From contig VJWM01000117.1 in the NCBI GenBank assembly GCA_010909165.1, forward strand, positions 620,001 through 684,000: a stretch of 64,000 nucleotides of DNA. The letters run 5' to 3'. The stretch is from Anthoceros angustus. Its lineage: Eukaryota > Plantae > Anthocerotophyta. Below, piece by piece: positions 18,420-64,000 of this stretch (the stretch's first letter is position 1; each line of letters opens with the position of its first letter). The position numbers and the translations under genes are program-made. The notes below the pieces were generated by a model. That model made no database searches and was not told the origin of the DNA. It worked only from the letters and a program-made list of their open reading frames with translations.

Positions 18420-19065
18420 TCATGGCCGACCCTTACAACTGCAACAACCATTTGCGAATCGATGCACACGGTACCCATCCCTTACAACAATGTCTCTGTT
18501 CAAGCCTTGACATGATCTCCGTGGAACTGTGGCAGTCACTGCATGCGTATGCGTAGATTCTTCGTTACCACCAGAGGTGTCCACTCGGAGTGTTCAAGAG
18601 ACCAAACGCCAGAGCTAGCTTCTCAGCATGCCCACAAAGCGCATCTTCCTTTTCCTTCTCACACAGTGGCTTCAACACAACACCACTTTGTGTGGGTACA
18701 TGGCCTCCTTCCTGCTTCAGACGTGCATTCGTGCTCTACCTTAAGCGCAATATCCTCCTTTCTCCCACCAGAAATCTATGTACCTGCTTATTCACCTCAA
18801 TGGTCGCCACTGCAGGTTTCTTGTTAGCTCCTGCTAACTTTCTCTGTGTTTCAATCCTGTCTACATCGGTCCACCTACCTGCATCTGCATAGGCATTGGC
18901 CATGAGCACATGCGCAGACGCCCTGAGGTCCAGCCTAACAATGCTTTCAAAACACCACATCGCCCTCTCTATATCCCCGTGACTTTTGCAGGCATTCAAC
19001 AAAGACGTCAAGCCCACAACATTACTTTGGCCCTCACATGATAATAGCATCTCTGCCTCATCTAA
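18420..19065 (-). pseudogene. E1-E2-DYW:KP (GRP) 3' fragment, indel-rich, part of a ~1.8-kb tandem duplication
   Basis: ORF 18736-19050 contains KKPAVATIEV; KGRP* at 18420. Near copy of 20188-20840. Confidence 0.75.
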
Positions 19066-19530
19066 AGGAAGGGAAGTTCAATGAACCCATGGATGTCACT
19101 CCTTAAAGGAAGAGAAGTTCCAATGAACCCATGTCATGATGTCATTCTTCTTTGAAGGAAGGAAGGCAAAATCTTTTCGATGCCTCGAAGGAAGGAAGTT
19201 CAATGACCCATGTGTGGATGTCATTCCTTGAAGGAAGGAAACAAAAGGTTTCGTGCTGTTCTTCCAATGACCCATGTGGATGTCACTCCTTGAAGGAAGG
19301 AAAGCGAAACCTTTTCGTCAATTCTTCCAATGACCCATGTGGATGTCACTCCTTGAAGGACGGAAGAGAAAGAAACCTTTTTTAGCTGGTTCTTCCAATG
19401 ACCCATGTGTGGATGTCACTCCTTGAAGGACGGAAAAGTGAAACCTTTTCGTCGGTTCTTCCAATGACCCATGTGTGGATGTCACTCCTTGAAGGAAGGA
19501 AAGTGAAACCTTTTTGCTGGTTCATAAGGA
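19065..19530. repeat. Second copy of the ~60-bp minisatellite array
   Basis: Matches 17250-17740 with many small deletions. Confidence 0.85.
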
Positions 19531-20187: not shown

Positions 20188-22762
20188 TCATGGCCGACCC
20201 TTACAACTGCAACAACCATTTGCGAATCGATGCACACGGTACCCATCCCTTACAACAATGTGTCTGTGTTCAAGCCTTGACATGACCTCCGTGGAACTGT
20301 GGCAGTCACCGCACATGCGTAGGTTCTTCGTTACCACAAGAGTCGTCCCACTCGGAGTGTGCAAGAGACCAAACGCCAGAGCCAGCTTCTCAGCATGCCC
20401 ACAAAGCGCATCTTCCTTTTCCTTCTCACACAGTGGCTTCAACACCAGCCTTGTCTGGGGTACATGGCCTCCTTCCTCCTTCAGACGTACATTCGTGCTC
20501 TCGACCTTAAGCGCAATATCCTCCCTTTTTTCTCCCACCAAAAATCTATGTACCTGCTTGTTGACCTCAATGGTCGCCACTGCAGGTCTCTTGTTAGCAC
20601 CTGCTAACTTTCTCTGTGTTTCAATCCTGTCTACATCGGTCCACCTACCTGCATCTGCATAGGCATTGGCCATGAGCACATACGCAGACGCCCATTGAGG
20701 GTCCAGCCTGACAATGCTGTCAAAACACCACATCGCCCTCGCTAGATCCCCGTGACTTTTGCAGGCATTCAACAAAGACATCAAGCCCACAAGATTACTT
20801 TGGCCCTCACAAGATAATAGCATCTCCTGTGCCTCATCTAAAAGGCCTGCACGCCCAAGAAGATCAATCATGCAAGTGTAATGTTCAATAGTAGGTTTGA
20901 CACCATGCTGTTCAGCCATGGAATCAAAGTGCTTGCGACCATCATGGACCAGTCCCTCGTGACCACATGCTACTAGAATGCAAGTAAACGTAGCACCATT
21001 AGGCTGAATACCGGCAACTAACATCTCCTCAAAGCAAGCTAGTGCTCTGTGACCATCATCACAAGTACCGTACCCAGATATCAGGGCTGTCCATGTCACC
21101 ACATCCTTTGTGGCCAAGCTGTCAAAAACCTGGCGTGCATCTTCCATTTCACCACATTTCGCATACATCTCCACCAGGCAGTTGCCCAACACTACATTAT
21201 CCAGCAGTCCTCTTTCAACTATCTGAGAGTGCAGCTGCCTGCCCTTCTGTAAGGCACCAGTACTTGCACAGGCCTTCAGAAGGCAAGCAAAAGTGAGATC
21301 GTTAGCCAAAATCACCCCTTCTTGCTCCATTTGTCCATACACAACAAGAGCCTCATGTCCGAAACCTTGCTGGGAATACCCAGCAATCAGCACCGTCCAT
21401 GTCACCACATCCTTTGTCGCCAAGCTGTCAAAAACCTGGTGTGCAGCTTCCAGTTCACCACATTTTGCATACATGTCCACAAGGCAGTTGCACAACACTA
21501 CATCATCCAGCAGTCCTCGTTTGACAATCTGTGAATGCAGCTGCCTGCCCTTCTGTAGGGCACCAGTGCTTCCACATGCCTTCAGAAGGCAAGCAAAAGT
21601 AACGTGGTCAGCCACAATGAGGCCCTCCTGCTCCATTCGTTCATACGCTACAAGTGCCTCTTGCCCGAGCCCTTGCTGTGCATACCCCGCAATCAACGCC
21701 GTCCATGTCACCACATCCTTTTTGGACAAGCTTTCAAAAACCTGGCGTGCATCTTTGAGTTCGCCACATTTTGCATACATGTCCACCAGGCAGTTGCCAA
21801 CAAACAAGTTACTAGGAATGCCACTGTGCAACACATCAAGGTGCACTTTTCTGCCTGATTCCAAGTCGCTAGCGAATGTGCAAGCCTGGAGGGCAGCTAC
21901 AAAGACGTGATCATTCGCCTTCACTCCTGACCTACGCATCTCATGGTACAGTTGTATGGCCTCCTTAGGTTTCCCATGCTTAGCATGTGCAGAAATTATG
22001 GAAAACCACATGAAGACATTTGGTTTCCACCCTGGTGAACACATCCATGGCCTCCTGCAGCCTACCTCCACCTGCATACATGCGCAATATATGGTTCCCC
22101 AAGTATGCACTTGACTCGTACCCAAGTTTGACAGTGAGATCATGAACTCGTCGCCCCACAACCAAATCCTTCTTAGCTGTACACAGCTTTAACACATCAT
22201 AAAACAGAGACTGAGAAATAGCAGAGTCTGCCTGCGCCAGAGATTCCAGGGCTCCAACGGCCTCAGACAGCTTCCCCTGCTGACATAACATGCTCACTGT
22301 TCCAGCCGTTACGACGCCCATCTCTGATCCTGCACGCTTCACAGGCGGAAAGCTCGAGTTGGCAGAGGAGGCACCACCACCCATCTGCATATCATGGGAA
22401 ACCAGCTGCTCATCAACCCAAGCTGGCTTAAACATGTTGTTTAACCACAGGACCTCGCCGGACCCCTTCCGCAGGAAATCAGGCGAACGGGAGCTCTTCT
22501 TATCTCGTCTGTTGTCCAACCACATGGTAGGATCCAGGAAAAATTGTTGCCACAAGCGCTCCTGCTCGCTGGAAAACCCGTTCCCACCCACACATTTTCT
22601 CGGAAGTGGAAGTGCTGGGCTCCTTACACTGCTGCACCTGGGGGCTTTGTTTGCCAGTGGTTCACTCCCTAAAGTGAAGTGAGCGAGAGCTCCTGGTAGA
22701 ATCCCTGAACACACACCAATTGGTTGGGTCCACGACGGGTCCGGTTGCCGAACAGTGGCCAT
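20188..22762 (-). CDS. PDF-motif + PLS PPR-E-DYW:KP (GRP) protein with one frameshift (~22030, likely sequencing error)
   Basis: ORFs 21980-22762 and 20188-22161 join across a short deletion in GTAGGGAAACC. Contains KRPAVATIEV, HAEKLA and CGDCH, ending KGRP*. Confidence 0.85.
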
Positions 22763-23074: not shown

Positions 23075-23340
23075 TTATGGAACAAAGCAAGGGAAACTTA
23101 CAAGGCAAACATGGAACAACGCAAGGGAAACTTACAAGGCAAACATGGAACAAAGCAAGGGAAACTTACAAGGCAAACATGGAATAAAGCAAGGAAACTT
23201 ACAAGGCATGGAACAAAGCAAGGGACAACCTACTAACAAAGCAAGCATAGAACAAAGCAAAGAACAACCTACTAACAAAGCAAGCATAGAACAAAGCAAG
23301 GGACCATCTATCAATAACGCAAGCATGGAACAAAGCAAGA
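23075..23340. repeat. Minisatellite, ~33-34-bp units (ATGGAACAAAGCAAGGGAAACTTACAAGGCAAAC and variants)
   Basis: Tandem repeats. Confidence 0.9.
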
Positions 23341-24054
23341 GATGACTTACAAGGCAACCATGGGACTAAGTAAGCTTTTGGTCCCCGAAGAGAAGGAAAA
23401 CACCACCAAGAGGTGTACCCCCAGGGTGGCATAGTAACTACAATGGAGGCATCCTGCTCCCAAACTAAAAACAATTGAGCCTCAAAACGTTTAACCAACG
23501 ACTTCTCATCTCAACATGTTTATATGTACTCAAGTCCCTTGGGTTTAGGGTTCCAACACTTTGGCATGACATTAATTGCTCTATCAACAGTGAGAGCAGC
23601 GGCTAATTCATTTGATAGCATCATGTTTGTTGTGCAAGTAGTCAAGCGGGACATGAGATTCCACTTTTGGACAACTCTCTTCGGCGCAACTACTCTCCCT
23701 CGACCTAAACCTACTCTTGTTTGTCATACCATTCCAGAATATTTTTTCCATCCCCTCGTTCTTCCATGACAATCTCCTCTAAGACTTGATCAAGCTTTGA
23801 TGACATTCTTCTCGTGCTCCTTGTGCGGGTATTGTTGTTCCAAGTGTTCTGTCATTTGCTGCTGGTGTTGCTTTATCATTTTATTGCTCTAAGTGCTTTG
23901 TCATTTTGCTGCTGTAAATAGTTGGCCTAATATTTTATGTAGAGCAGCTTGCGCTTTTTCTTGTGGTTAACATAAAATTAATGTATAGCATATGTACATA
24001 TTTGGGCAGGTGGAGACAAATGGTTTAGATAACTTCAAGGAAAGAAAGAAACAT

Positions 24055-36856: not shown

Positions 36857-39553
36857 TCACGGCCGACCCTTACAAGTGCAACAACCAGCTGTGAAACGAT
36901 GCACACGGTACCCATCCCTTACAACAATGTCTCTCTGCTCAATCTTTGACATGATCTCCGTGGAACTGTGGCAGTCGCTGCACATGCGTAGGTTCTTTGT
37001 TACCACCAGAGGTGTCCCACTCGGAGTGTTCAAGAGACCAAACGCCAGAGCTAGCTTCTCAGCATGCCCACAAAGCATGTCTTCCTTTTGCTTCTCACCC
37101 AGGGGCTTCAACACCAACTTTGTTTGAGGGACGTGGCCCCCTTCCAGCTCCAGACGTGCAGTCGTCCTCTCTACCTTAAGAGCAATATCCTCTCTCCTTC
37201 CTCCCACCCGAAATCTATGTACCTGCTTATTCACCTCAATGGTCGTGACTGCAGGTTTCTTGTTAGCTCCTGCTACCCTTCTCTGTGTTTCAATCCTGTC
37301 TACATCGGTCCACCTACCTGCATCTGCATAGGCATTGGCCATGAGCACATATGCGGTCGCGTCCTGGGGCTCCAGCCGAACAATGCTTTCAAAACACCAC
37401 ATTGCCCTCTGTATATCCCCATGACTTTTACAGGCATTCAACAAAGACCTCAAGCCCACAACATTACTTTGGACCTCACATGACAACAGCATCTTCTCTG
37501 CCTCATCTAAATGACCTGCACGCCCAAGAAGATCAATCATGCAATTGTAATGCTCACAAGTACGTTTGATGCCATGCTGTTGAGCCATGGAATCAAAGTG
37601 CTTGCGACCCTCGTGGACCAGTCCCGCATGACTGCATGCTACTAAGAGGCAAGTAAAAGTAGCATCATTAGGCGGAATACCAGAAGCTAACATCTGCTCA
37701 AAGCAAGCTAGTGCCTTGTGACCATCATCACAAGTACCATACCCAGAGATCAGGGCGGTCCATGTCACCACATCCTTTGTGGCCATGATGTCAAAAACCT
37801 GCCGTGCATCTTCCAGTTCACCACATTTTGCATACATGTCCAACAAGCAGGTGCACAGCACTGTGTTGTCCAACAATCCCCTTTCGACAATCTGCGAGTG
37901 CAGGTGCCTGCCCATTTGTAAGGCACCAGTGCTTCCACAGGCGTTCAGAAGGCAAGCAAGAGTAACATCGTCAGCTAAAATCAGGCCCGCCTCCTCCATT
38001 TGTCCATACAACTCAAGTGCCTCTTGGCCCAGTCCTTGCTGTGCATACCCAGAAATCAGCGCTGTCCATGTTACCACATCCTTTGTGGAAAGGCTGACAA
38101 AAACCTGGCGTGCAGCTTCCAGTTCACCACATTTTGCATACATATCCACCAGGCAGTTGCCCAAGACTACGTCATTCAGCAGTCCTCTTTCGACAATCTG
38201 TGAGTGCAGCTGCCTGCCCTTCTGTAGGGCACGAGTGCTTGCACAGGCCTTCAGAAGGCAAGCAAAAGTAACATGGTCAGCCAGAATCAACCCCTCCTGC
38301 TCCATTTGTCCATACAGAACAAGTGCCTCATGTCCGAGCCCTTGCTGGGCATATCCACCTATCAGGGAATTCCATGTCACCACATCCTTTGTGTTCATGC
38401 TGTCAAAAACATGGCGTGCATCTTTCAGTTCACCACATTTTGCATACCCAGATATCAGGGAATTCCATGTCACCACATCCTTTTTGGCCATGCTGTCAAA
38501 AACCTGGCGTGCATCTTTCAGTTCGCCACACTTTGCATACATGTCCACCAGGCAGTTGCCAACAAACAAGTCAGGAGGGACGCCACTGTGCAACACATCA
38601 CAGTGCACTTCTCTGCCAGATTCCAAATCGCCGGCAAATGCGCAAGCCTGAAGGGCAGCTACAAAGACGTGACCATTCGCCTTCACACCTGACCTACGCA
38701 TCTCATGGTACAGTTGTATGGCCTCCTTAGGTTTCCCGTGCTTAGCATGGGCAGATATTATGGAGAACCACATGAAGACATTTGGTTTCCCCACCCTGGT
38801 GAACACATCTATCGCCTCCTGCAGACTACCTCCACATGCATACATGCGCAAGATATGGTTCCCCAAGTATGCACTCGACTCGTACCCAAGTTTGGCAGTC
38901 AGATCATGAACTCGTCGCCCCACAACCAAATCCTTCTTAGCTGTACACAGTTTTAGCACAGTGTAAATCAGAGACTGAGAAATACCACACTTCGCCTGCG
39001 CTAGAGAATCCAGGGCTCCGACGGCCTCAAAAAGCTTCCCCTGCTGACATAACATGCTCACGGTGACAGCCGTTACGACGCCCATTTCCGGTCCTGCACT
39101 CGTCCCAGGTTCAGGCTTATCTGGAGAGCTCCACTGGGAAAGAGAGGCACCATCACCCATCAGCATATCCAAGGAAACCAGCTGCTCATCAACCCAAGCA
39201 GGCTTAAACAAGTTGTTCAACCACAGCACCTCGCCGGACCCCTTACGTCGGAAGTCAGGCGAACGGGAGCTCTGCTTGTCTCGTCTGTTGTCCAACCACA
39301 TGGTAGGGTCCAGAAAAAACTGTTGCCACAGGTGCTCCTGCTCCAGGCGACGACCATCGCTGGAAAATCCGTTCCCACCCACACATCTTCTCGGAAGTGG
39401 AAGTGCTGGGCTTCTTACACTGCTGCACCTGGAGGCTTTGTTTGCCAGGAGTTCACTCCCTGAAGTGATGTGAGCGGGAGCTCCTAGTAGCATCCTAGTA
39501 CACACACCAATTTGAAGGGTCCACAACAATTCTGGTTGCCATACTGTGGCCAT
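36857..39553 (-). CDS. Intact ~898-aa PDF-motif + PLS PPR-E-DYW:KP (GRP) protein (candidate U-to-C editing factor)
   Basis: Unbroken ORF 36857-39748. The family start MATVWQ is at 39553. Contains WLDNRRDKQSSRSPDFRRKGSGEVLWLN, KKPAVTTIEV, HAEKLA and CSDCH, ending KGRP*. Confidence 0.95.
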   Translation of the reverse strand: MATVWQPELLWTLQIGVCTRMLLGAPAHITSGSELLANKASRCSSVRSPALPLPRRCVGGNGFSSDGRRLEQEHLWQQFFLDPTMWLDNRRDKQSSRSPDFRRKGSGEVLWLNNLFKPAWVDEQLVSLDMLMGDGASLSQWSSPDKPEPGTSAGPEMGVVTAVTVSMLCQQGKLFEAVGALDSLAQAKCGISQSLIYTVLKLCTAKKDLVVGRRVHDLTAKLGYESSAYLGNHILRMYACGGSLQEAIDVFTRVGKPNVFMWFSIISAHAKHGKPKEAIQLYHEMRRSGVKANGHVFVAALQACAFAGDLESGREVHCDVLHSGVPPDLFVGNCLVDMYAKCGELKDARQVFDSMAKKDVVTWNSLISGYAKCGELKDARHVFDSMNTKDVVTWNSLIGGYAQQGLGHEALVLYGQMEQEGLILADHVTFACLLKACASTRALQKGRQLHSQIVERGLLNDVVLGNCLVDMYAKCGELEAARQVFVSLSTKDVVTWTALISGYAQQGLGQEALELYGQMEEAGLILADDVTLACLLNACGSTGALQMGRHLHSQIVERGLLDNTVLCTCLLDMYAKCGELEDARQVFDIMATKDVVTWTALISGYGTCDDGHKALACFEQMLASGIPPNDATFTCLLVACSHAGLVHEGRKHFDSMAQQHGIKRTCEHYNCMIDLLGRAGHLDEAEKMLLSCEVQSNVVGLRSLLNACKSHGDIQRAMWCFESIVRLEPQDATAYVLMANAYADAGRWTDVDRIETQRRVAGANKKPAVTTIEVNKQVHRFRVGGRREDIALKVERTTARLELEGGHVPQTKLVLKPLGEKQKEDMLCGHAEKLALAFGLLNTPSGTPLVVTKNLRMCSDCHSSTEIMSKIEQRDIVVRDGYRVHRFTAGCCTCKGRP

Positions 39554-40322: not shown

Positions 40323-43300
40323 TCACGGTCGACCCTTACAACTACAAGAACCAGCTGCGAAACGATGCACACGGTACCCATCCCTTACAACAACGTCTCT
40401 CTGTTCAACCCTTGACATGATCTCCGTGGAACTGTGGCAGTCACTGCACATGCGTAGATTCTTCGTTACCACCAAAGGTGTCCCGCTCGGAGTGTTCAAC
40501 AGGCCAAACGCCAGAGCTAGCTTCTCAGCGTGCCCACAAAGCGCATCTTCCTTTTCCTTCTCACACAGTGGCTTCAACACCAACTTTGTATGGGGTACAT
40601 GGCCTCCTTCCTCCTTCAGACGTGCATTCGTGCTCTCTACCTTATGCGCAAGATCATCTCTCCTTTCTCCCACCAGAAATCTGTGTACCTGCTTATTCAC
40701 CTCAATGGTCGCCACTGCAGGTTTCTTGTTAGCTCCTGCTGCCATTCTCTGTGTTTCAACCCTGTCTACATCGGTCCACCTACCTGCATCTGCATATGCA
40801 TTGGCCATGAGCACATACGCAGGCGCCCATTGAGGGTCCAGCCTGACAATGCTTTCAAAACACCACATTGCCCTCTCTATATCCCCGTGACTTTTGCAGG
40901 CATTCAGCAAAGTCGTCAAGACCACAACATTACTTTGGCCTCACATGATAATAGCATCTTCTCTGCCTCATCTAAATGGCCTGCACGCCAAGAAGATCAA
41001 TCATGCAATTGTAATGCTCAATAGTAGGTTTGATGCCATGCTGTTCAGCCATGGAATCAAAGTGCTTGACCCTCGGACCAGTCCTCATGACTGCATGCTA
41101 CCAAAAGGCAAGTAAAAGTAGCATCAGGCTGAATACCGGCAACTAACATCTCCTCAAAACAAGCTAGTGCCTTGTGACCTTCATCACAAGTACCATACCC
41201 AGATATCAGGGCATCCATGTCCACATCCTTTGTGGCTGTTGTCAAAACCTGGCGTGCATCTTCCAGTTCACCACATTTTGCATACATGTCCACCAGGCAG
41301 TTGCCAACACTACATCATCCAGCAGTCCTCTTTCACAATCTGAGTGCAGCTGCCTGCCCTTCTGTAAGGCACCAGTGCACAGGCCTTCAGAAGGCAAGCA
41401 AAAGTAACATGGTCAGCCAAAATCAGGCCCTCCTGCTCCATTTGTCCATACAGAACAAGCGCCTCTTGGCCGAGTCCTTGCTGTGCATACCCAGCAATCA
41501 GGGCATCCATGTCACCACATCCTTTGTGGCCAAGCTGTCAAAACCTGGCGTGCATCTTCCAGTTCACCACATTTTGCATACATGTCCACCAGGCAGTTGC
41601 CAACACTACATCATCCAGCAGTCCTCTTTCAACAATCTGTGAGTGCAGCTGCCTGCCCTTCTGTAAGGCACCAGTGCTTGCACAGGCCTTCAGAAGGCAA
41701 GCAAAAGTAACATGGTTAGCCAAAATCAGGCCTCCTGCTCCATTTGTCCATACAGAACAAGCGCCTCTGGCCGAGTCCTTGCTGTGCATACCCAGCTATC
41801 AGGGCATTCCATGTCACCACATCCTTTGTGGCCAAGCTGTCAAAAACCTGGCGTGCATCTTCCAGTTCACCACATTTTGCATACATGTCCACCAGGCAGT
41901 TGCCAACACTACATCATGCAGTCCTCTTTCAACAATCTGTGAGTGCAGCTGCCTGCCCTTCTAAGGCACCAGTGCTTGCACAGGCCTTCAGAAGGCAAGC
42001 AAATGGTTAGCCAAAATCAGGCCCTCCTGCTCCATTTGTCCATACAGAACAAGCCTCTTGAGTCCTTGCTGTGCATACCCAGCAATCAGGGCATTCCATG
42101 TCACCACATCCTTTGGCCAAGCTGTCAAAAACCCGGCGTGCATCTTCCAGTTCACCACATTTTGCATACATGTCCACCAGGCAGTTGCCCACCAGTATGT
42201 TATCTAGCTCTCCTCGCTCAGCTATCTGTGAGTGCAGATGCCTTCCCTTCTGCAAGGCACCAGCGCCTGCACAGGCCTTCAGAAGGCAAGCAAAAGTAAC
42301 GTGGTCAGCCACAATGACGCCCTCCTGCTCCAGTCGTTCATACACAACAAGCGCCTCTTGACCTAGCCCTTGCTGTGCATACCCAGCGATCAGCGCCGTC
42401 CATGTCACCACATCCTTTTTTGCCATGCTTTCAAAAACCTGTCGTGCATCTTTCAGTTCGCCACACTTTGCATACATGTCCACCAGGCAGTTGCCAACAA
42501 ACAAGTCAGTAGGAATGCCACTGTGCAGCATATCAAAGTGCACTTTTCTGCCAGATTCCAAGTCGGCGGCAAATGCACAAGCCTGAAGGGTAGCTACAAA
42601 GACGTGACCATTCGCCTTCACACCTGACCTACGCATCTCATGGTACAGTTGTATAGCCTCGTTGGGTTTCCCATGCTTAGCATGCAGAGATTATGGAACA
42701 CCACATGAAGGCATCTGGTTTCCCACCCTGGTGAACACATCCATGGCCTCCTGCAGCCTACCTCCACATGCATACATGCGCAAGATATGGTTCCCCAAGT
42801 ATGCACTCGACTCGTACCCAAGTTTGGCAGTCAGATCATGAACTCGTCGCCCCACAACCAAGTCCTTCCTAGCTGTACACAGTTTTAGCACAGTGTAAAA
42901 CAGAGACTGAGAAATAGCAGAGTCTGTCTGCGCCAGAGATTCCAGGGCTCCAACGGCCTCAGACAGCTTCCCCTGCTGACATAACATGCTCACGATTCCA
43001 GCCGATACGACGCCCAATTCCGATTCTACACGCCTGCCAGGTTCAGGCTTATCTGGAGAGCGCACCTTGGAAAGAGAGGCACCCTGACCCATCTGCATAT
43101 CCAAGGACACCAGCTGCTCATCAACCCAAGCTGGCTTAAACATGTTGTTTAACCACAGGACCTCGCTGGACCCCTTACGCAGGAAGTCAGGCGAACGGGA
43201 GCTCTGCTTATCTCGTCTGTTGTCCAACCACATGGTAGGGTCCAGAAAGAATTGTTGCCACAAGTGCTCCTGCTGCTGGCGACGACCATCGCTGGAAAAC

Positions 43301-47022: not shown

Positions 47023-50000
47023 TCATGGTCGTCCCTTACAGCTGCAGGAACCAGCTGCGAAACGATGCACACGGTACCCATCCCTTACAACAATGTTTCT
47101 CTGTTCAACCCTTGACATGATCTCCGTGGAGCTGTGGCAGTCACTGCACATGCGTAGATTCTTTGTTACAACCAGAGGGGTCCCGCTCGGAGTGTTCAGC
47201 AGACCAAACGCCAGAGCTAGCTTCTCAGCATGCCCACAAAGTGCATCTTCCTTTTCCTTCTCACACAATGGCTTCAACACCAACTTTGTATGGGGTACAT
47301 GGCCTCCTTCCTCCTTCAGACGTGCATTTGTGCTCTCTACCTTAAACGCAATATCATCTCTTCTTTCTCCCACCAGAAATCTATGTACCTGCTTATTCAC
47401 CTCAATGGTCGCCACCGCAGGCTTCTTGTTAGCTCCTGCTACCATTCTCTGTGTTTCAATCCTGTCTACATCGGTCCATCTCCCTGCATCTGCATAGGCA
47501 TTGGCCATGAGCACATAAGCGGGCGCCTGGTGAGGGTCCAGCCTAACAAGCCTTTCAAACGACCACCTCGCTCTCTCTATATCCCCATGAATTTTGCAGG
47601 CATTCAGCAAAGACGTCAAGCCCACAACACTACTTTGGTCATCACATGATAATAGCATCTTCTCTGCCTCATCTAAACGGCCTGCACGCCCAAGAAGATC
47701 AATCATGCAATTCTGATGCTCAACGTTAGGTTTGATGCCGTGCTCTTCAGCCATGGAATCATAGAGCTCGCGACCCTCATGCACCAGTCCCTCATGACTG
47801 CATGCTACTAAAAGGCATGTAAACGTAGCGTCGTCAGGCTGAACACCAGCAACTAACATCTCCTGGAAACACGCTAGTGCACTGTGACCTTCATCACAAC
47901 CATACCCAGATATCAGGGCATTCCATGTCACCACATCCTTTGTGTTCATGCTGTCAAAAACCTGGCGTGCATCTTCCAGTTCACCACATTTTGCATACAT
48001 GTCCACCAGGCAGGTGCCAACCAATGTTATCAGCAGTCCTCTTTCACAATCTGTGAGTGCAGCTGCCTGCCCTTCTGTAAGGCACCAGTGCTTGCACAGG
48101 CCTTCAGAAGGCAAGCAAAAACATGGTCAGCCAAAATCAGGCCCTCTCCATTTGTCCATACAGAACAAGCGCCTCTTTCCAGTCCTTGCTGTGCATACCC
48201 AGCAATCAGGGCATTCCATGTCACCACATCCTTTGTGCCAAGCTGTCAAAAACCTGGCGTGCATCTTCCAGTTCACCACATTTTGCATACATGTCCACCA
48301 GGCAGTGCCAACCAGTACGTTATCCAGCAGTCCTTTTTCCACAATCTGTGAGTGCAGCTGCCTGCCCTTCTGCAAAGCACCAGCGCTTGCACATGCCTTC
48401 AGAAGGCAAGCAAAAGTAACATGGTCAGCCACAGCCAGTCCCTCTTCCTCCATTTGTCCATACAGAACAAGCGCCTCTGGTCCCAGCCCTTGCTGTGTAT
48501 ACCCAGCAATCATGGCATTCCATGTCACCACATTTTTTGTGGCCAAGTTAAAGACCTGCCGAGCACCTTCCATTTCCCCACATTTTGCATACATGTCCAC
48601 CAGGCCGGTGCCAACCAATGGGTTATCTAGCAGCCCTTTTTCCACAATCTCTGAGTGCAACTGCCTGCCCTTCTGCAAGGCACCGGCACTTGCACAAGCC
48701 TTCAGAAGGCAAGCTAAACTAACATGGTCAGCCACAGCCAGTCCATCTTCCTCCATTTGTCCATGCAGAATAAGTGCCTCGTTTCCTAGACCTTGCTGTG
48801 TATACCCAGCAATCAGGGCTGTCCATGTCACCACACTTTTTGTGGCCAAGCGGTTAAAAACCTGGCGTGCATCTTCCAATTCGCCACATTTTACATACAT
48901 GTCTACCAGGCCGGTGCCAACCAGTACGTTATCCAGCAGTCCTTTTTCCACAATCTGTGAGTGCAGCTGCCTGCCCTTCTGCAAAGCACCAGCGCTTGCA
49001 CATGCCTTCAGAAGGCAAGCAAAAGTAACATGGCCACAGCCAGCCTCCTCCATTTGTCCATACAGAACAAGCGCCTCTGGTCCCAGCCCTTGCTGTGTAT
49101 ACCCAGCAATCATGGCATTCCATGTCACCACATTTTTTGTGGCCAAGTTAAAGACCTGCCGAGCACCTTCCATTTTCCCACATTTTGCATACCCAGCTAT
49201 AAGGGCCGTCCATGTCACCACATCCTTTGCGGCCAAGCTGTCAAAAACCCCACGTGCATCTTCCAGTGCGCCACATTTCGCATACATGTCCACGAGGCAG
49301 GTGCCAACCGGTACGTTATCCAGCAGTCCTCTTTCCACAATCTGTGAGTGCAGCTCCCTGCCCCTCTGTAAGGCACCAGTGCTTGCACAGGCCTTCAGAA
49401 GGCAAGCAAAAGTAACATCGCTCGCCACATTCAGGCCTTCCTGCTCCATTTGTCCATACAGAACGAGCGCCTCTGGTCCCAGCCCTTGCTGTGTATACCC
49501 AGCAATCATGGCATTCCATGTCACCACATTTTTGGCCTTGTGGCACCTTCCATTTTCCCACATTTTGCATACCCAGCTATAAGGTCCATGTCACCACATC
49601 AGCCAAGCTGTCAAAAACCACGTGCATCTTCAGTTCCACATTTTGCATACATGTCCACCAGGCAGTTGCCCACCAGTATGTTATCAGCAGTCCTCTTTCC
49701 ACAATCTGTGAGTGCAGCTGCCTGCCCTCTGTAAGGCACCAGTGCTTGCACAGGCCTTCAGAAGGCAAGCAAAATACATATCGCCATTCAGGCCTCCTGC
49801 TCCATTTGTCCAGAACAAGCGCCTCTGGCGAGCCCATGCTGCATACCAGGTAGGATTCCATGTCACCACATCCTTTGTGGCCAAGCTGTCAAAAACCTCA
49901 CGTGCAGCCTCCAGTTCGCCACTTTTTGCATACATGTCCACCAGGCAGGTGCCAAGAAACAAGTTAAGAGGAATGCCACTGTGCAACACATCACAGTGCA

Positions 50001-50949
50001 CTCGTTTGCCAGATTCCAGGTCGGCAGCCAATGCACAAGCTTGAAGGGCAGCAGCAAACACGTGAGCATCCGCCTTCAAACCTGACCTACGCATCTCCTG
50101 GTACAGTTGTAAGGCCTCCTTAGGCTTCCCGTGTTTAACATGTGCTGAAATTATGGAAGACCACATAAAGGCATCCGGTCTGCCTACCCTGGTGAGCACA
50201 TCCATGGCCTCCTGTAACCTACCTCCATATGCATACATGCGTATGAGATGGTTCCCCACGTATGCATTCGACTCGTACCCAAGTTCGACAGTGAGATCAT
50301 GAACTCGCTGGCCCACAACCAAATCCTTCTTAGCTGTACACAGTTTCAGCACAGTATAAAACAGAGACGGAGAAATAGGACAGTCTGTCTGCGCCAGACA
50401 TTCCAGGGCTCGAACGGCCTCAGTAAGCTTCCCCTGCTGACAAAACGTGCTCACGGCTCCAGGCGTTGCGACGCCCATTTCCCATCCTGCACGCCTGCCA
50501 GGCTCATCTGGAGAGCTCGACTTGGAAGGGGAGACCCCATGACCCATCTGCATATCCAAAGATAGGAGCTGCTCATCCACCCAAGCTGGCTTGAACATGT
50601 TGTCTAACCAGAGGACCTCGCCGCCGGACCCCTTACGCCGGAAGTCAGGCGAACGCGAGCCCTTCTTATCTCGCCTGTTGTCCCACCACATGGTAGGCTC
50701 CAGAAAAAACTGTTGCCACAAATTCTCCTGCTGCTGGCGACGACCATCGCTGGAAAATCCTTCCCACCCCACACATTCTCTTGGAGGTGGACGTGCTGGG
50801 TTCCTTGCACTGCTGCACCTGGAGGCTGGGTTGTCTCCCAGCGGTCGACTTCCTGGGGGGATGAGATGGGCGGGAGCAACTCGTGGAATGCCTGTGCACT
50901 CACTAGTTTGTTGGGTCCGCAGTAGACCCGGTTGCCGCACTGTGGCCAT
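47023..50949 (-). pseudogene. Long-array PDF-motif + PLS PPR-E-DYW:KP (GRP) gene, frameshifted at ~48030-48310 and ~49500-49860
   Basis: ORFs 49684-50988 (MATVRQ at 50949), 48127-49563 and 47023-48114 (KGRP*). Confidence 0.8.
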
Positions 50950-51622: not shown

Positions 51623-52440
51623 TATAATGCTCCTTGAAGGTGCTCATCCCAATTTTGCAGTAGCTTCTCACATAGCTTAGATAAAACCTTAATAGCTAGC
51701 TTGTTGGTGCTCACGGCTTGTTCGTTGGAGATGGGGTGATACAGAGTTGTCATCTTGTGCTTCACTGAATAAGCCCTAGCAAACCCATCTATCATGTTGT
51801 TAGCAAACCCATCTATCATGTTGTTAGCAAACCCATCTATCATGTTGTTAGCAAACCCATCTATCATGTTGTTAGCAAACCCATCTATCATGTTGTTAGC
51901 AAACCCATCTATCATGTTGTTACTCTCTGCCGTGGTCAGTGACAATTTCTATTGGGCGATTATCTACGAGAACAAGAACTATCCAGTGAGTTCTCTCGAC
52001 AAGGCATGCAAGGCCTAAGCTTCAATCCACTTGGTAGCAAACTCGGTAGCCGTGTTTATGTATTTGATGCCTTGTAGACTAGGATGTTCAACAACCACTA
52101 CTTTCGTGACACCTCCGCGTACCTCTGGCAACTTGAACATGCTGGCAATACGCTCCCACATCTTGGAACATGGAAGACCAAAAATACCCAACCCAGAGTA
52201 ATTTTTTTGCCATGGCAGTTGCATCAAAATGACCCCCACGCACGGAATTGTGCATCTCCAAGAGCACTATGAAGATCTACTGCCCTCAAATGCGGAGATG
52301 AAGAATCTGTTCGGGCCTAACTTTGAATAATCCACCATCCACCACAGCATAATCCTTCGTCAGCAATATTCTTCCCAAGTCCTTCTGTTCTTGAGGCAAC
52401 ATCCTATTTGTAAGGTAGTCCATCAGCTCGTTGTAGAGTG
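51622..52440 (-). mobile_element. Degenerate Ty3/Gypsy integrase remnant with an internal 24-bp minisatellite (51776-51921)
   Basis: HKMTTLYHPISNEQAVSTNK..WDEHLQGAL and ATEFATKWIEA resemble rve core/C-terminal motifs (TxYHPQxNGQxERxN, DYxTKWxEA); frames broken. Confidence 0.65.
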
Positions 52441-52884: not shown

Positions 52885-55800
52885 ATGGTCAGAGTATGGC
52901 AACCGGATGCAATGTGGACCCAGCAAATTGGTGAGTGTGCAGGGATTCTTCCAGGATCTCCCGCTCAGCTCATCTCTTCAGGGAATCAAGCTCTGGGAGA
53001 CAGCCAAGCCTCCAGATGCAGCCGTGTGAGGAATCCAGCATTCCCACTTCCCAGAAAATGTGTGGGTTGGGAAGGATTTTGCAACGATGGTCGTGGCCAG
53101 GCGCAGGAGCAAGAGCTCCTGTGGCAACAATTTTTCCTGGACCCTACCATGTGGTGGGACAAGAGGCGACATAATAAGAGCTCCCGTTCGCCTGACTTCC
53201 AGCGGAAGGGAACTGGAGGCGAGGTCCTGTGGTTAAACAACATGTTCAAGCCAGCTTGGGTGGATGAGCAGCTCGTTTCTTTGGATATGCACACGGGTCA
53301 TGGTGCTTCTCCTTTCAAGTCGAGCTCACCGGAGAAGCCTGAGGCTGGCAGGCGTACAGAGTCAGAAATGGGCGTCCAAATGGCTGCAACAGTGAGCACG
53401 TTATGCCAGCAGGGTAAGCTTACTGAGGCTGTTGGAACCCTGGAATCTCTGGTGGCGCAGACAGACTCTCCTATTTCTCCGTCTCTGCTTTATACTGTGC
53501 TAAAGTTGTGTACAGCTAAAAGGGATTTGTTGGTGGGGAAACGAGTTCATGATCTCATCGTCGAACTTGGGTACGAGTCGAATGCATACTTGGGCAACCA
53601 TCTCTTGCGCATGTATGCATGTGGAGGTAGGTTACAGGAGGCCATGGATGTGTTCACTAGGGTAGGCAAACCAGATGCCTTTATGTGGGGTTCCATAATT
53701 GCTGCATATTCTAAGCAAGGGAAACCAAAGGAGGCCATACAACTTTACCATGAGATGCGGAGGTCAGGTGTGAAGGCGGATGCTCACGTCTTTGCAGCTG
53801 CCCTTCAAGCTTGTGCATTTGCTGCCGACTTGGAGTGTGGCAGAAGAGTGCACTGTGATCTGTTGCATAGTCGTATTCCTCTTAACTTGTTTGTTGGAAC
53901 CTGCTTGGTGGACATGTATGCAAAATGTGGCCAACTGGAGGATGCGCGCAGGGTTTTTGACAGCTTGGCAAGAAAGGATGCGGTGACATGGACGGCCCTA
54001 CTTTCTGGATATGCACAGCAAGGGCTCGGCCAAGAGGCGCTTGTTCTGTATGGACAAATGGAGCAACAGGGGCTGAATTTGGCGAACAATGTTACTTTTG
54101 CTTGCCTTCTGAAGGCATGTGCAAGCACTGGTGCCTTACAAAGGGGCAGGCAATTGCATTCACAGATTATGGAAAGGGGACTGTCGGATGATGTACTCGT
54201 TGGCACCTGCCTGGTGGACATGTATGCAAAATGCGGCGAACTGGAAGATGCACGTAAGGTTTTTGACAGCTTGACCACTAAGGATGTTGTGACGTGGACA
54301 GCCCTTATAGCTGGGTATGCAAAATGTGGTGAACTGGAACGTGCACGGCAGGTTTTTGACAGATTGGCCACAAGAAATGTGGTAACATGGAATGCCCTGA
54401 TTGCTGGGTATACACAGGAAGGGCTCGTTCAAGAGGCACTTGTCCTGTATGGACAAATGGAGAAGGAGGGCCTGATTGTAGCTGACCATGTTACTTTTGC
54501 TTGCTTGCTGAAGGCCTGTGCAAGCACTGGTGCCATACAGAAGGGCAGGCAGCTGCACTCCCAGATTGTGGAAAGAGGACTGCTAGATAACATACAGGTT
54601 GGCAATTGCCTGGTGGACATGTATGCGAAATGTGGCGAATTGGAAGATGCGCGTGGGGTTTTTGACAACATGGCCACGAAGGATGTGGTGACATGGACAG
54701 CCCTGCTTGCTGGGTATGCACAGCAAGGGTTCGGGCAAGAGGCCCTTGTTCTGTACGGACAAATGGAGGAAGAGGGCCTCATTTTGGCTAACGATGTTAC
54801 CTTTGCGTGCCTTTTGAAGGCCTGTGCAAACACTGGTGCGTTACAGAGGGGCAAGCAGCTGCACTCACACATTGTGAAAAGGGGCCTGCTAGATAACATA
54901 CTGGTTGGCACCTGCCTGGTGGACATGTATGCAAAATGTGGTGAACTGGAAGATGCACACGGGGTTTTTGACAGCTTGGCTACAAAGGATGTGGTGACAT
55001 GGAATGCCCTGATTGCTGGGTACACACAGCAAGGGCTTGGTCAAGAGGCGCTTGTTCTGTATGGACAAATGCAGGAAGAGGGCCTGATTTTGGCTAATGA
55101 CGTTACTTTTGCTTGCCTACTGAAATCCTGTGCAAGCAGTGGTGCGTTACAGAAGGGCAGGCAGCTACACTCTCAGATTGTGGAAAGGGGACTGCTAGAT
55201 AATGTACTCATTGGCACCTGCCTGGTGGACATGTATGCAAAATGCGGGGAACTGACAGATGCACGCTGGGTTTTTGACAGCTTGGCCACGAAGGATGTGG
55301 TGACATGGACAGCCCTGATTGCTGGCTATGCACAGCAAGGGCTTGGTCAAGAGGCGCTTGTTGTATGCACAATTCGAGCAGGAAGGCCTGGTTGTAGCTG
55401 ACCATGTTACTCTAGCTTGCCTACCCAAGGCCTGTGCAAACGCTGGTGCCTTACAGAAGGGCAGGCAGCTGCACACACAAATTGTGGAAAGAGGACTGCT
55501 AGATAACCTACTGGTTAGCAACTGCCTAGTAGACATGTATGCAAAGTGTGGCGAGCTGGAAGAAGCACGCCGGGTTTTTGACAGCTTGGCCACAAAGGAT
55601 GTTGTCACATGGAATGCCCTGATATCTGGATGTGGTACTTGTGATAAGGGTCACAATGCCCTAGCTTGTTTTGAGGAGATGTTAGTTGCTGGCATTCAGC
55701 CTGATGATGCTACTTTCATTTGCTTATTAGTAGCATGCAGCCATGAAGGACTGGTGCATGAGGGTCGCAAGCTCTTTGATTCCATGGCTGAACAGCATGG

Positions 55801-57400: not shown

Positions 57401-60400
57401 ATGGTCACGGTATGGCAACCGGACCCGTTCTGGACCCAACAAATTGGTGTTTGTACAGGGATTCTGCCAGGAGCTCCCGCTCACCGGAGTCCACCCCTAG
57501 CAAACAAAGCCTGCAGGTGCAGCAGTGTAGGGAGCCCAGCACTTCCACTTCCCAGAAAATGTGTGGGTGGGGACGGGTTTTCCAGCGATGGTCGTCGCCT
57601 GGAGCAGGAAAGCTTGTGGCAACAGTTTTTCCTGGACCCTACCATGTGGTGGGACAACAGACGAGATAAGAAGAGCTCCCGTTCGCCTGACTTCCGGCGT
57701 AAGGGATCCGGCGAGGTCCTGTGGTTAAACAGCATGTCTAAGCCAGCTTGGGTTGATGAGCAGTTGGTTTCCTTGGATATGGAGATGGGTCATGGTGCCT
57801 CTCCTTCCAAGGGGAGCTCTCCGGATAAGCCTGATCCTGGGAGGCGTGCAGGATCGGAAATGGGCGTTGTAACCGGGGGAACCGTGAGCATGTTATGTCA
57901 GCAGGGGAAGCTTTGTGAGGCCGTTGGAGCCCTGGAGTCTCTGGCACAGACAGGCTCTGCTATTTCTCAGTCTCTGTTTTACACGGTGCTAAAACTGTGT
58001 ACAGCTAAGAAGGATTTGGTTGTGGGGCGACGAGTTCATGACCTCACTATCAAACTTGGGTACGAGTCGAATGCGTATTTGGGGAACCATATCTTGCGCA
58101 TGTATGCACGTGGAGGTAGGCTGCAGGAGGCCATGGATGTGTTCACCAGGGTAGGCAAGCCAGATGCCTTCATGTGGTTTTCCATAATCTCCGCATATGT
58201 TAAACATGGGAAACCTGATGAGGCCATACAACTGTACCATGAGATGCGTGCGTCAGGAGTCAAGGCGGATGCTCACGTCTTTGTAGCTGCCCTTCAAGCT
58301 TGTGCATTTGCTGCCGACGTGGAATCTGGCAGAGAAGTGCACTGTGATGTGTTGAAATGTGGCATTCCTCTTAACTTGTTTGTTGGCAACTGCCTGGTGG
58401 ACATGTATGCAAAATGTGGCCAACTGAAAGATGCACGCCAGGTTTTTGAAAGCTTGGCCCAAAAGGATGTGGTGACATGGAATGCCCTGATTGCTGGGTA
58501 TGCAGCAAGGGCTCGGCAAGAGGCGCTTGTTGTGTATGAACGAATGGAGCAGGAGGGTCTGATTGTGGCTGACCACGTTACTTTTGCTTGCCTTCTGAAG
58601 GCCTGTGCAAGCGCTGGTGCTTTACAGAAGGGAAGGCATCTGCACTCACTCATTGTGGAACGAGGACAGCTACGTAACGTTCTGGTGGGCAACTGCCTGG
58701 TGGACATGTATGCAAAATGTGGTGAACTGGAAGAGGCACACCAGGTTTTTGAAAGCTTGGCCACAAAGGATGTGGTGACATGGACGTCGCTCATTGCTGG
58801 TTATGCTCAGCAAGGGCTTGGACACAAGGCAATTGTTGTGTATCGACAAATGGAGCAGGAGGGCCTGGCTGTTGCTAACCATGTTACTTTTGCTTGCCTT
58901 CTGAAGGCCTGTGCAAGCACTGGTGACTTACAGATGGGCAGACATCTGCACTCACAGATTGTAGACAGAAAGCTGCTGGATAATATATTGGTGGGCAGTT
59001 GCCTGGTGGATATGTATGCAAAATGTGGTGAACTGAAAGATGCACACCAGATTTTTGAAAGCTTGCCCACAAAGGATGTCGTGACATGGACGGCGCTGAT
59101 TGCTGGTTATGCACAACAAGGGCTCGGGGAAGAGGCGCTTGCTGTGTATCAACACATGGAGCAGGAGGGCCTGATTGTGGCGGACGACGTTACTTTTGCT
59201 TGCCTTTTGAAGGCCTGTGCAAGTGCTGGTGCCTTACAGAAAGGCAGGCATCTGCACTCTCAGATTGTGGAACGAGGTCTATTAGATAATACACTGGTGG
59301 GCAACTGCCTCGTGGACATGTATGCAAAATGTGGTGAACTTGAAGATGCACGCCAGGTTTTTGACAGGTTGGCCACAAAGGATGTGGTGACATGGAATTT
59401 CCTGATAGCTGGGTATGCACAGCAAGGACTCGGCCAAGAGGCGCTTGTTCTGTTCGGAAAAATGGAGCAAGATGACCTGACTTTGGCTAACCATGTTACT
59501 TTTGCTTGCCTTCTGAAGGCCTGTGCAAGCAATGGGGCCTTACAGAAGGGCAGGCAGCTGCATTCACAGATTGTTGAAAGAGGACTGCTGGATGATGTAG
59601 TGTTGGGCAACTGCCTGGTGGACATGTACGCAAAATGTGGTGAACTGGAAGATGCACGCTGGGTTTTGACAGCTTGGCCACAAAGAATGTGGTGACATGG
59701 AATGCCCTGATATCTGGGTATGGTACTTGTGATGATGGTCACAGAGCACTAGCTTGTTTTGAGGAGATGTTAGTTGCCGGTGTTGAGCCTAATGATACAA
59801 CGTTTACTTGCCTTTTGGTAGCATGCAGTCATGCCGGGCTGGTCCACGAGGGACGCAAGCACTTCGATTCCATGGCTGAACAGCATGGCATCACACCGTC
59901 TCTTGAGCATTACAATTGCATGATTGATCTTCTTGGGCGTGCAGGCCAATTAGATGAGGCAGAGAAGATGCTATTGTCATGTGAGGGCCAAAGTAATGTT
60001 GTGGGCTTGACGTCTTTGTTGAATGCCTGCAAAACTCACGGGGATATAGAGAGGGCGATGTGGTGTTTTGAAAGCATTGTTAGGCTGGACCCACAAAGGG
60101 CGTCTGCGTATGTGCTCATGGCCAACGCCTACGCAGATGCAGGGAGGTGGACCGAAGTAGACAGGATTGAAGCACAGAGAATGGTAGCAGGAGCTAACAA
60201 GAAACCTGCAGTGGCGACCGTTGAGGTGAACAAGCAGGTACATAGATTTCTGGTGGGAGAAAGAAGGGACGATCTTGCGCTCAAGGTGGAGAGCACGAAT
60301 TCCCGGCTGAAGGAGGAAGGAGGCCATGTACCCCATACAAAGTTGGTGTTGAAGCCATTGTCTGAGAAAGAGAAGGAAGATGCACTTTGTGGGCATGCTG

Positions 60401-60603
60401 AGAAGCTAGCTCTGGCGTTTGGCCTGTTGAACACTCCGAGTGGGACACCTCTGGTGGTAACGAAGAATCTACGCATGTGCAGTGACTGCCACAGCTCCAC
60501 GGAGATCATGTCAAGGGTTGAAAACAGGGAAATTGTTGTAAGGGATGGGTACCGTGTGCATCGATTTGCAGCTGGTGCTTGCACCTGTCATGGTCGATCG
60601 TGA
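57401..60603 (+). CDS. PDF-motif + PLS PPR-E-DYW:KP protein (C-terminus GRS), one frameshift at ~59665
   Basis: ORFs 57401-59695 and 59674-60603 join at a T-run missing one base. Contains KKPAVATVEV, HAEKLA and CSDCH. Confidence 0.88.
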
Positions 60604-60644: not shown

Positions 60645-60885
60645 GACCTGGATGAGCAGCTGTTCTTCTTTGGACATGCAGATGGGTCAGGGTGAGTCTC
60701 CTTTCAAGTCGAGCTCACCGGATAAGCGTGAGGCTGGCAGGCTTGCAGACTCGGAAATAGCGTCCAAATGGCCGCAACAGTGACCACGTTATGCCAGCAG
60801 GGTAAGCTTATTGAGGCCGTTGGAACCTTGGAATCTCTGGCGCAGACAGATTCTCCTGTTTCTCCGTCTTTGCTTTCTTCTGTGC
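60645..60885 (+). pseudogene. Orphan fragment of the PPR-family N-terminal linker (DEQL..LDMQMG..AATVTTLCQQGKL)
   Basis: Homologous to 53260-53500 and 62465-62700. Confidence 0.7.
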
Positions 60886-62089: not shown

Positions 62090-64000
62090 ATGGCCACAGT
62101 ATGGCAACCTGATGCAATGTGGACCCAGCAAATTGGTGAGTGTTCAGGGATTTTACGAGGAGCTCCTGCTCACCTCATCACCGTAGAGAGTCAACTGTTC
62201 GGAGACAACCAAGCCTCCAGGTGCAGCGGTTTAAGGATCCCAGCATTTCCACTTCCCAGGAATTGTGTGGGTTGGGAAGGATTTTGCACCGATGGTCGTC
62301 GACAAAAGCAGGAGCAGGAGCTCCTCTGGGAACAACTTTTTCTGGACCCTACCATGTGGTGGGACAACAGGCGAGATAAGAAGAGCTCCCGTTCGCCTGA
62401 CTTCCGGCGTAAGGGATCTGGCGGCGAGGTCCTGTGGTTGAACAACATGTTCAAGCCAGCTTGGGTGGATGAGCAGCTCGTTACTTTGGATATGCAGATG
62501 GGTCATGGTGCTTCTCCTCTTAAGGCGAGCTCACCGGATAAGCCCGAGGCTGGCAGGCGTGCAGAATTGGAAATGGACGTCGAAATGGCTGCAACAGTGA
62601 GCACGTTATGCCAGCAGGGTAAGCTTGCTGAGGCCGTTGGAACCCTGGAATCTCTGGCGCAGACAGACTCCCCTGTTTCTCCGTCTCTGCTTTATACTGT
62701 GCTGAAGCTGTGTACAGCTAGAAGAGATTTGGTTGTGGGGAAACGACTTCATGACCTCACTGTCAAACTTGGGTACGAGTCGAATGCATACTTGGGCAAC
62801 CATCTCTTGCGCATGTATGCATGTGGAGGTAGGTTACAGGAGGCCATGGATGTGTTCACCAGGGTAGGCAAACCGGATGCCTTTATGTGGGGTTCCATAA
62901 TTTCCGCATATGCTAAGCAAGGGAAACCAAAGGAGGCCATACAACTTTACCATGAGATGCGCAGGTCAGGTGTGAAGGCGGATGCTCACGTCTTTGCAGC
63001 TGCCCTTCAAGCGTGTGCGTTTGCTGCCGATTTGGAATCTGGCAGAAGAGTGCACTGTGATCTGTTGCATAGTCGTATTTCTCTTAACTTGTTTGTGGGT
63101 ACCTGCTTGGTGGATATGTACGCAAAATGTGGTCAACTGGACGATGCACGCGGGGTTTTTGACAGCTTGGAAACAAAAAATGTGGTGACATGGACGGCCC
63201 TTATAGATGGGTATGCAAAATGTGGCGAACTGGACGGTGCACGTCAGGTTTTTGACAGCTTGCCCACAAAAAATGTGGTGACATGGAATGCCCTGATTGC
63301 TGGGTATACACAGCAAGGGCTCGGTCAAGAGGCACTTCTTCTGTATGGACAAATGGAGCAGGAGGGCCTGACTTTGGCTGACGATGTCACTTTTGCTTGC
63401 CTTCTGAAGGCCTGCGCAAGCACTGGTGCTTTACTGAGAGGCAGGCAGCTGCACTCACAGATTGTGGAAAGGGGACTGCTAGATAACATACTTGTTGGCA
63501 CCTGCCTGGTGGACATGTATGCAAAATGTGGCAAACTGGATGATGCACGCATGGTTTTTGACAGCTTAGCCAGGAAGGATGTGGTGACATGGAATGCCCT
63601 GATTGCTGGGTATACACAGCAAGGGCTCGGTCAAGAGGCACTTGTTCTGTATGGACAAATGGAGCAGGAGGGCCTGAATTTGGCTGACGATGTCACTTTT
63701 GCTTGCCTTCTGAGGGCCTGTGCAAGCACTGGTGCCTTACAGAGGGGCAGGCAGCTGCACTCACAGATTGTGGAAAGAGGACTGCTAGATAACATACTTG
63801 TTGGCACCTGCCTGGTGGACATGTATGCAAAATGTGGCAAACTGGATGATGCACGCATGGTTTTTGACAGCTTAGCCAGGAAGGATGTTGTGACATGGAC
63901 GGCCCTGATATCTGGGTATGGTGCTTGTGATGAAACTCAGCTCGCACGAGGTTGTTTCCGGGAGATGTTAGTGGCCGGTATTCAGCCCGATGATGCTGCT
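62090..64000 (+). CDS. PDF-motif + PLS PPR protein, open to the window end (DYW presumably beyond it)
   Basis: ATG GCC ACA GTA TGG at 62090 is in frame with ..QPDDAA at 64000. Contains WWDNRRDKKSSRSPDFRRKG. Absent from the ORF track, consistent with having no stop in the window. Confidence 0.9.
   Translation, partial: MATVWQPDAMWTQQIGECSGILRGAPAHLITVESQLFGDNQASRCSGLRIPAFPLPRNCVGWEGFCTDGRRQKQEQELLWEQLFLDPTMWWDNRRDKKSSRSPDFRRKGSGGEVLWLNNMFKPAWVDEQLVTLDMQMGHGASPLKASSPDKPEAGRRAELEMDVEMAATVSTLCQQGKLAEAVGTLESLAQTDSPVSPSLLYTVLKLCTARRDLVVGKRLHDLTVKLGYESNAYLGNHLLRMYACGGRLQEAMDVFTRVGKPDAFMWGSIISAYAKQGKPKEAIQLYHEMRRSGVKADAHVFAAALQACAFAADLESGRRVHCDLLHSRISLNLFVGTCLVDMYAKCGQLDDARGVFDSLETKNVVTWTALIDGYAKCGELDGARQVFDSLPTKNVVTWNALIAGYTQQGLGQEALLLYGQMEQEGLTLADDVTFACLLKACASTGALLRGRQLHSQIVERGLLDNILVGTCLVDMYAKCGKLDDARMVFDSLARKDVVTWNALIAGYTQQGLGQEALVLYGQMEQEGLNLADDVTFACLLRACASTGALQRGRQLHSQIVERGLLDNILVGTCLVDMYAKCGKLDDARMVFDSLARKDVVTWTALISGYGACDETQLARGCFREMLVAGIQPDDAA

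Follow-up and report, generated by a model that had tools for sequence, protein, structure and literature searches.

An OSB-type PDF domain at the N terminus of putative PPR-DYW:KP editing factors in the hornwort Anthoceros angustus

A cluster of PDF-bearing PPR genes

The window, by which we mean the whole 64,000-nucleotide stretch of Anthoceros angustus DNA analysed here (GC content ~49%), contains PPR genes clustered in tandem, some on each strand. Eleven of them are PLS-PPR-DYW:KP paralogues of the GRP type with an N-terminal PDF block, and all copies share one layout, in which an ATG opens a leader of 69–78 residues that runs in frame into the PDF and then the PLS array (Table 1). The block at 57614–57778 has nine further copies in the window, 84–91% identical to it (tblastn, E 1e-27 or better). 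The first-pass annotation had placed these ten copies correctly, each to within two bases; an eleventh, at 33199–33074, was absent from its list.

Pfam identifies PPR, E and DYW domains in the window proteins, and the order of PLS array, E1, E2 and DYW is that of the GRP subgroup of PPR-DYW:KP proteins. All seven complete C-termini carry a 133-residue DYW domain with a KP box in place of the PG box, HAE (Ala following the His of HxE), CxxC, and Lys88, counted from the KP Lys. The C-terminal triplet is GRP in five of the seven, GRS in the gene at 57401–60603 and RCP in that at 7522–10431. These data bear out the DYW:KP assignment made at first pass. GRP is a hornwort variant of DYW:KP (PMC9478123), and Lys88 is required for U-to-C editing, a chemistry demonstrated on RNA uridine (PMC11845758). 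PMC11845758 also states that natural U-to-C editing factors have not shown activity in any assay; activity is reported there and in PMC9478123 for designer KP proteins only. By homology, then, the window genes are putative nuclear genes for organelle-targeted PLS-PPR-DYW:KP editing factors. They share the PLS array, E1/E2 and all the C-terminal features listed above with the hornwort factors of PMC9478123 and PMC11845758, and differ in having an additional folded N-terminal domain, which goes unmentioned in the available passages of those papers. The designer KP proteins described there likewise lack a PDF, whereas the window KP proteins have one.

Table 1. Features of the PDF-bearing genes in the window and examples of prokaryotic loci
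Position	Strand	Feature	Basis or remark
57401–57613	+	Putative organelle-targeting leader of 71 aa	In-frame stop two codons upstream of ATG
57427–57489	+	Out-of-frame relic of a second PDF	DNA score 30 vs shuffled mean 16.4; reached by 1 of 1000 shuffles
57614–57778	+	OSB-type PDF domain of 55 aa, with three short strands between two helices	tblastn, OSB-derived HMM, AF2 model
57779–57883	+	Variable S/P/G-rich linker	dN/dS 0.83
57884–60033	+	PPR array of PLS type, in P-L-S cassettes of 306 bp	Pfam, cassette alignment
60034–60201	+	E1/E2 region	Pfam
60202–60603	+	DYW:KP domain, 133 aa: KP box, HAE, Lys88, CxxC, GRS end (GRP type)	Pfam
4231–4395	+	PDF copy	tblastn
7522–10431	+	Intact paralogue, 969 aa	ATG-to-stop reading frame
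7747–7908	+	PDF of the 969-aa paralogue: 1-aa deletion, two conserved Trp replaced	tblastn
22391–22555	-	PDF copy	tblastn
28129–28293	-	PDF copy	tblastn
33074–33199	-	Damaged PDF copy, in-frame 13-aa deletion	tblastn
36857–39553	-	Intact paralogue with full PDF (39331–39167) and GRP end	ATG-to-stop reading frame
43099–43263	-	PDF copy	tblastn
43459–43391	-	Best-preserved out-of-frame relic, upstream of the 43099–43263 PDF	DNA alignment
50554–50721	-	PDF copy	tblastn
53119–53286	+	PDF copy	tblastn
62324–62491	+	PDF copy; gene continues beyond the window end	tblastn
28489–28421; 7551–7634; remaining leaders		Further leader relics	DNA alignment
L004:12674–13483	-	C4 zinc-ribbon core locus	Core pattern
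L072:5299–6099	-	C4 zinc-ribbon core locus	Core pattern

Other elements are interspersed among the genes. A MADS-box gene or fragment lies within the cluster at 15122–15538 (+; SRF-TF, E 1.2e-11). E-DYW:KP ends with no PDF-bearing 5′ part close by are found at 18432–18984, 30274–30826 and 35190–35610 (-), and a linker fragment (60651–60848) and a leader fragment (46103–46041) stand apart from full genes. A minisatellite of 66–69 bp is common to 17172–17740 and 19201–19514; further short tandem repeats occupy 3013–3179, 23077–23374, 34115–34516 and 51777–51922.

Only two of the 11 genes, at 7522–10431 and 39553–36857, are open from ATG to stop. As assembled, the gene at 57401–60603 is not a single ORF, because one nucleotide is missing from a T run near 59664–59667; it also has compensating deletions of 2 and 1 nt near 58503 and 58515. 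Among 28 aligned 306-bp cassettes, the eight broken ones hold 23 frameshifting deletions, with no insertions and no in-frame stops, and the four most broken differ from the consensus by 4–10 substitutions, as against 22–39 in intact cassettes. Over whole genes, nearly all indels are deletions of 1–4 nt. One identical G-run deletion occurs in three non-sister genes, and the closest relatives of two of these are intact at that site. Dense runs of 1–4 nt deletions with few substitutions, seen at 41000–42150, 48000–49900, 35150–35650 and 18490–18930, probably reflect unpolished long-read consensus. Genuine decay would bring substitutions and stops, whereas a poorly polished long-read consensus yields a pattern of deletions only; we therefore think it quite likely that the broken frames are errors of long-read assembly. 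If so, this assembly gives a wrong tally of hornwort editing genes that are dead and those that are live.

The leader contains 4–8 acidic (D/E) and 3–10 basic (R/K) residues, a composition only partly typical of an organelle targeting peptide; its earlier description as acid-poor holds only to a moderate degree. The first 35 codons of each leader encode, in another frame, a decayed PDF (best tblastn E 3.7e-5; 63–70% DNA identity). In DNA-level alignment, six of ten leaders exceed at least 998 of 1000 codon shuffles, and an HMM built without window sequences ranks two relics directly behind the true copies (E 0.008 and 0.012). In several paralogues the relic frame is still opened by an ATG that lies out of frame, 11 nt past the start codon. 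We rejected the relic as a live ORF, given eight stops in its frame and none in the main frame. The simplest history is that the leader is the older PDF of a tandem pair, whose frame would have slipped just after W-Q and which then turned into a leader.

Identity, conservation and distribution of the PDF domain

The first-pass annotation had proposed that the N-terminal block is a PDF motif of the kind found in plant OSB proteins. Profile and structure comparisons both uphold this identification. The block has the Pro-Asp-Phe signature and the conserved Trp residues that define the ~50-residue motif. A profile of the ten window copies, searched against 1.84 billion proteins, retrieved 634 at E up to 0.001, including OSB1 of Populus (E 2.6e-22) and OSB3 of Anthurium (E 1.3e-14), which carry an SSB domain. 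In the reverse direction, an HMM made from the PDFs of non-PPR proteins, six of them with a confirmed SSB domain, gives the block 90 bits. An AF2 model is compact (helix, three strands, helix; pLDDT 92) and superposes on an SSB/OSB-family Atlas cluster with TM 0.94 and rmsd 1.1 over 62 residues, both sides being predicted models; three PPR/DYW Atlas clusters (57–127 members) match at TM 0.84–0.93. By profile and predicted fold, then, the block is an OSB-type PDF domain, homologous to the PDF motifs of OSB proteins. No Pfam model covers it, PHROGs gave weak matches only, and searches of the PDB by sequence and by fold returned no significant solved structure for the plant PDF. Two candidate matches were dropped: the CP29 N-terminus (E 0.3–1.4) and an Atlas feature match to Phage_gp49 (score 0.81, low recognition).

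The window proteins are not themselves OSB proteins, since Pfam finds no OB-fold (PF00436) in them. OSB1-4 and PTAC9 (Zaegel 2006, via PMC6963530 and PMC4166229) have the same ~50-residue domain by our profile and predicted-structure comparisons; in them, an OB-fold is followed by one to four C-terminal PDFs. The window proteins instead have a single N-terminal PDF, fused to a PPR array and DYW domain. The best-conserved PDF residues are Trp, Phe and Pro. All near-invariant residues are retained in the window family; a conserved loop Asn-Pro, present in OSB proteins, is missing from every window copy. The domain carries a net charge of only about +2. The PDF of AtOSB1 is sufficient for ssDNA binding (PMC6963530), and OSB1 and OSB2 favour ssDNA over RNA (PMC4166229); for the window PDFs, ssDNA binding is a prediction carried over from AtOSB1 by homology alone.

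The domain has been conserved by selection. Across ten paralogues, the PDF shows 0.86 amino acid identity versus 0.60–0.67 in its flanks, and its dN/dS is 0.14 (CI 0.08–0.22). The corresponding ratios are 0.23 for DYW, 0.30 for E1/E2, 0.83 for the linker, and 0.55 and 0.75 for the two leader halves; all are pooled pairwise values that ignore the tree. That the block is more conserved than the adjoining linkers, as had been noted at first pass, is thus confirmed. Although the ratio is flattered by a high dS in the PDF (0.51), dN is equal in PDF and DYW (0.073), and purifying selection on the PDF is about as strong as that on the DYW domain. Recent duplication or gene conversion as the source of this conservation is excluded by the high dS, which is not lowered in the block. 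Two of the 11 PDF copies are damaged, one of them within the otherwise intact 969-residue gene at 7522–10431, so the PDF may be dispensable in some paralogues.

The fusion of PDF and PPR array is not confined to the window. About 17 proteins among the best 150 of the 634 matches combine a PDF with a PLS array; carriers include Adiantum, Ceratopteris, Pteridium, Selaginella and Diphasiastrum, and some of the proteins have two or three PDFs. The first-pass annotation had linked the PDF to KP editases and raised the question of whether it co-occurs with the KP clade alone. It does not: the full-length fern and lycophyte fusions are PLS-E proteins that bear the same N-terminal PDF, stop after the E region and have no DYW domain. 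This rules out KP-specificity and implies that KP chemistry is no precondition for the fusion. Among the best 150 of 634 matches, the only fusion with DYW:KP is P0095, which is of the GRP type. Its neighbours (L001:1–1104 and 7295–8970) are PPR genes, one with no PDF before the array and one with a truncated PG-like end; PDF-less and PDF-bearing genes therefore share clusters.

Sequence comparison among the window genes, ferns and lycophytes thus shows that they have a PDF-PPR fusion in common. Four Pteridium transcript contigs have PDF and PPR in a single ORF, which is indirect evidence that the fusion is expressed. In a 64-column tree, a branch with support 86/85 has 16 of the 17 PPR-fused PDFs on the same side as the window copies, and the data do not reject a single origin of PPR-fused PDFs (p-AU 0.14). 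The tree fits an old fusion, short of proof. A word-based homologue search returned no matches for an atypical window copy and just three and six for fern queries, and so under-samples the family. Other arrangements also appear among the matches: P0001-P0004, P0006 and P0010 are built mostly of 7–12 PDF repeats, some with no SSB match, and P0057 (1526 aa) has a kinesin motor domain after three PDFs and may be a fused gene model.

In the openly searchable literature, which excludes subscription papers and with them the main hornwort PPR surveys, we found no paper describing this architecture, in keeping with the first-pass remark that no characterisation of it was known. Within the same limits, the PDF motif together with PPR or pentatricopeptide led only to an OSB review, and OSB jointly with PPR and hornwort or fern led to no paper; neither OSB nor PDF occurs in a 2026 survey of editing-factor fusions. 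The pairing of PDF and PPR editor is real, under selection and, within these limits, apparently undescribed. A selected N-terminal domain is missing from surveys and constructs because designers are built from PPR and DYW parts only and Pfam holds no model for it.

Phage and bacterial relatives

The Atlas structure search with the plant PDF also returned two phage clusters (TM 0.75 and 0.68) and, weakly, a Rad52 cluster. When the core was searched for as a DNA pattern, 59 viral contigs (IMG/VR, L004-L062) and at least 120 genome contigs (GTDB, L063-L182) matched, with ~0.03 matches expected by chance; the genome contigs are mostly of Gemmatimonadota among the matches listed. Several conserved features lie outside the search pattern, namely an upstream Cys pair (174 of 179 loci), a downstream Cys and Trp (175/179), the loop Asn-Pro (171/179) and an acidic tail with a Pro-Phe end (145/179), and they confirm that the prokaryotic core is a real family. 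ERF domains occur in 38, and Rad52/22 domains in 73, of the at least 179 loci. Profiles of the prokaryotic and plant forms align with a probability of 98.6% over 32 columns (hhalign), a value that is partly circular because of the way in which the prokaryotic set was found.

These phage ERF and bacterial Rad52/22 annealing proteins have the core, WDNR..K.NPK.PDFK...G..W, in common with the plant PDF. They carry it in a C-terminal C4 zinc ribbon, with four Cys that putatively bind zinc, and have SSB-like acidic tails; plants have two flanking helices instead of the Cys. The core is modelled as a small beta zinc ribbon, and its best matches among solved structures, all below the level of trust, are topoisomerase I (Z 3.9, rmsd 2.8, 41 aligned) and the GRF domains of NEIL3 (Z 2.5) and APE2 (Z 2.1). 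The core had no match in cultured phage genomes, Pfam has no family for it, and we found no paper linking the PDF to prokaryotes in the openly searchable literature. A separate phage gene, L002:2932–3609, lies between genes for a DNA polymerase and a UvsX-like recombinase; its product has an N-terminal zinc-ribbon core and an acidic tail and is possibly an unrecognised SSB-like protein. Judged by pattern and profile, the PDF core is not restricted to plants: a predicted zinc-ribbon form is encoded at no fewer than 179 loci of phages and bacteria. The core thus occurs on three kinds of protein that act on single strands, namely OB-fold, ERF and Rad52 proteins. These relatives overturn the view of the PDF motif as specific to plants, and offer small soluble models for work on its structure and binding.

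Possible roles of the PDF in editing factors

We propose that the PDF provides a sequence-independent grip on single-stranded nucleic acid, by which the PPR array would load more readily onto RNA, a proposal with roughly an even chance of being correct. In its favour are the homology to OSB proteins, the ssDNA binding of the AtOSB1 PDF (PMC6963530), the purifying selection, and the recurrence of the core on proteins that act on single strands. In this scheme, the leader would be cleaved on import and the PDF kept in the mature protein. A basic and aromatic surface of the PDF would bind single-stranded nucleic acid without sequence preference and, joined to the array by a flexible linker, could prolong residence on organellar transcripts and help the array find or open its target site. 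Specificity would still come from the PPR array and chemistry from DYW:KP. In lineages that lack MORF proteins, which are confined to seed plants (PMC13386178), the PDF might serve as a cis RNA-binding helper. RRM-PPR fusions of the SM-ORRM class (PMC13386178) provide a precedent, as they too place an accessory domain for single-stranded nucleic acid on a PPR protein; that domain has an unrelated fold, and the fusions are rare and mostly P-class; the PDF fusion, by contrast, has multiplied to form a large family of PLS proteins. Counted against a grip on RNA are the preference of OSB1 and OSB2 for ssDNA (PMC4166229), the two damaged copies, the loss of Asn-Pro and the low charge. The domain is not needed for catalysis, since designer KP editors are active without it (PMC9478123).

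It is also conceivable, though rather unlikely, that the PDF retains the ssDNA preference of OSB proteins (PMC4166229) and keeps the editor anchored at nucleoids, transcription bubbles or R-loops, thereby coupling editing to transcription. The full set of near-invariant residues is consistent with such a role, as is the presence of prokaryotic relatives on DNA-annealing proteins. To our knowledge, seed-plant editors manage without a PDF, and we count this against nucleoid tethering. A single PDF on a monomer would, moreover, probably bind weakly; AtOSB2 acts as a tetramer (PMC6963530). A role in protein contacts is unlikely as well: the PDF would stabilise the degenerate first PPR repeats as an N-terminal cap, or recruit partners, which for E-class proteins might include a catalytic one. 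Trp, Phe and Pro, the residues most conserved, would suit a core or an interface, the PDF is common on E proteins with no DYW, and in the RNAP complex that gave the (weak) structural match, the zinc ribbons of topoisomerase I make protein contacts too (Z 3.9). The 35-residue, near-neutral linker between PDF and array argues against a packed cap, however, and ssDNA binding is the sole PDF activity that has been measured (PMC6963530).

The damaged window copies, the copy that decayed into a leader through a frameshift, and several fern proteins in which the PDF begins only 16–29 residues after the annotated Met would all fit a PDF that is a passenger, or that belongs to a presequence removed by cleavage, and that was acquired along with 5′ targeting exons which a PPR gene took from an OSB-like gene. 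We regard this as improbable, given a dN/dS of 0.14 with high dS, the retention of the invariant residues from the window genes to ferns and lycophytes, and the C-terminal position of PDFs in OSB proteins, away from the targeting peptide (PMC4166229). Finally, the PDF might bring the deaminase-fold domain to ssDNA, so that organellar DNA is edited; DYW-like bacterial deaminases do act on ssDNA (PMC11789416, PMC12494967). This we consider very improbable, as most fern and lycophyte fusions have no DYW domain at all and KP chemistry is known on RNA uridine via Lys88 (PMC11845758).

A broader history can be sketched, doubtful as it is. A zinc-ribbon module of phage and bacterial DNA-annealing proteins would have given rise to the PDF of plant OSBs and, through these, entered a large family of PPR editors in seedless plants, where it would tether them to ssDNA at organellar transcription sites and couple editing, including U-to-C editing, to transcription. 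A role of the PDF in editing could account for the ability of seedless plants to edit although they lack MORF proteins, or could be used to improve engineered editors.
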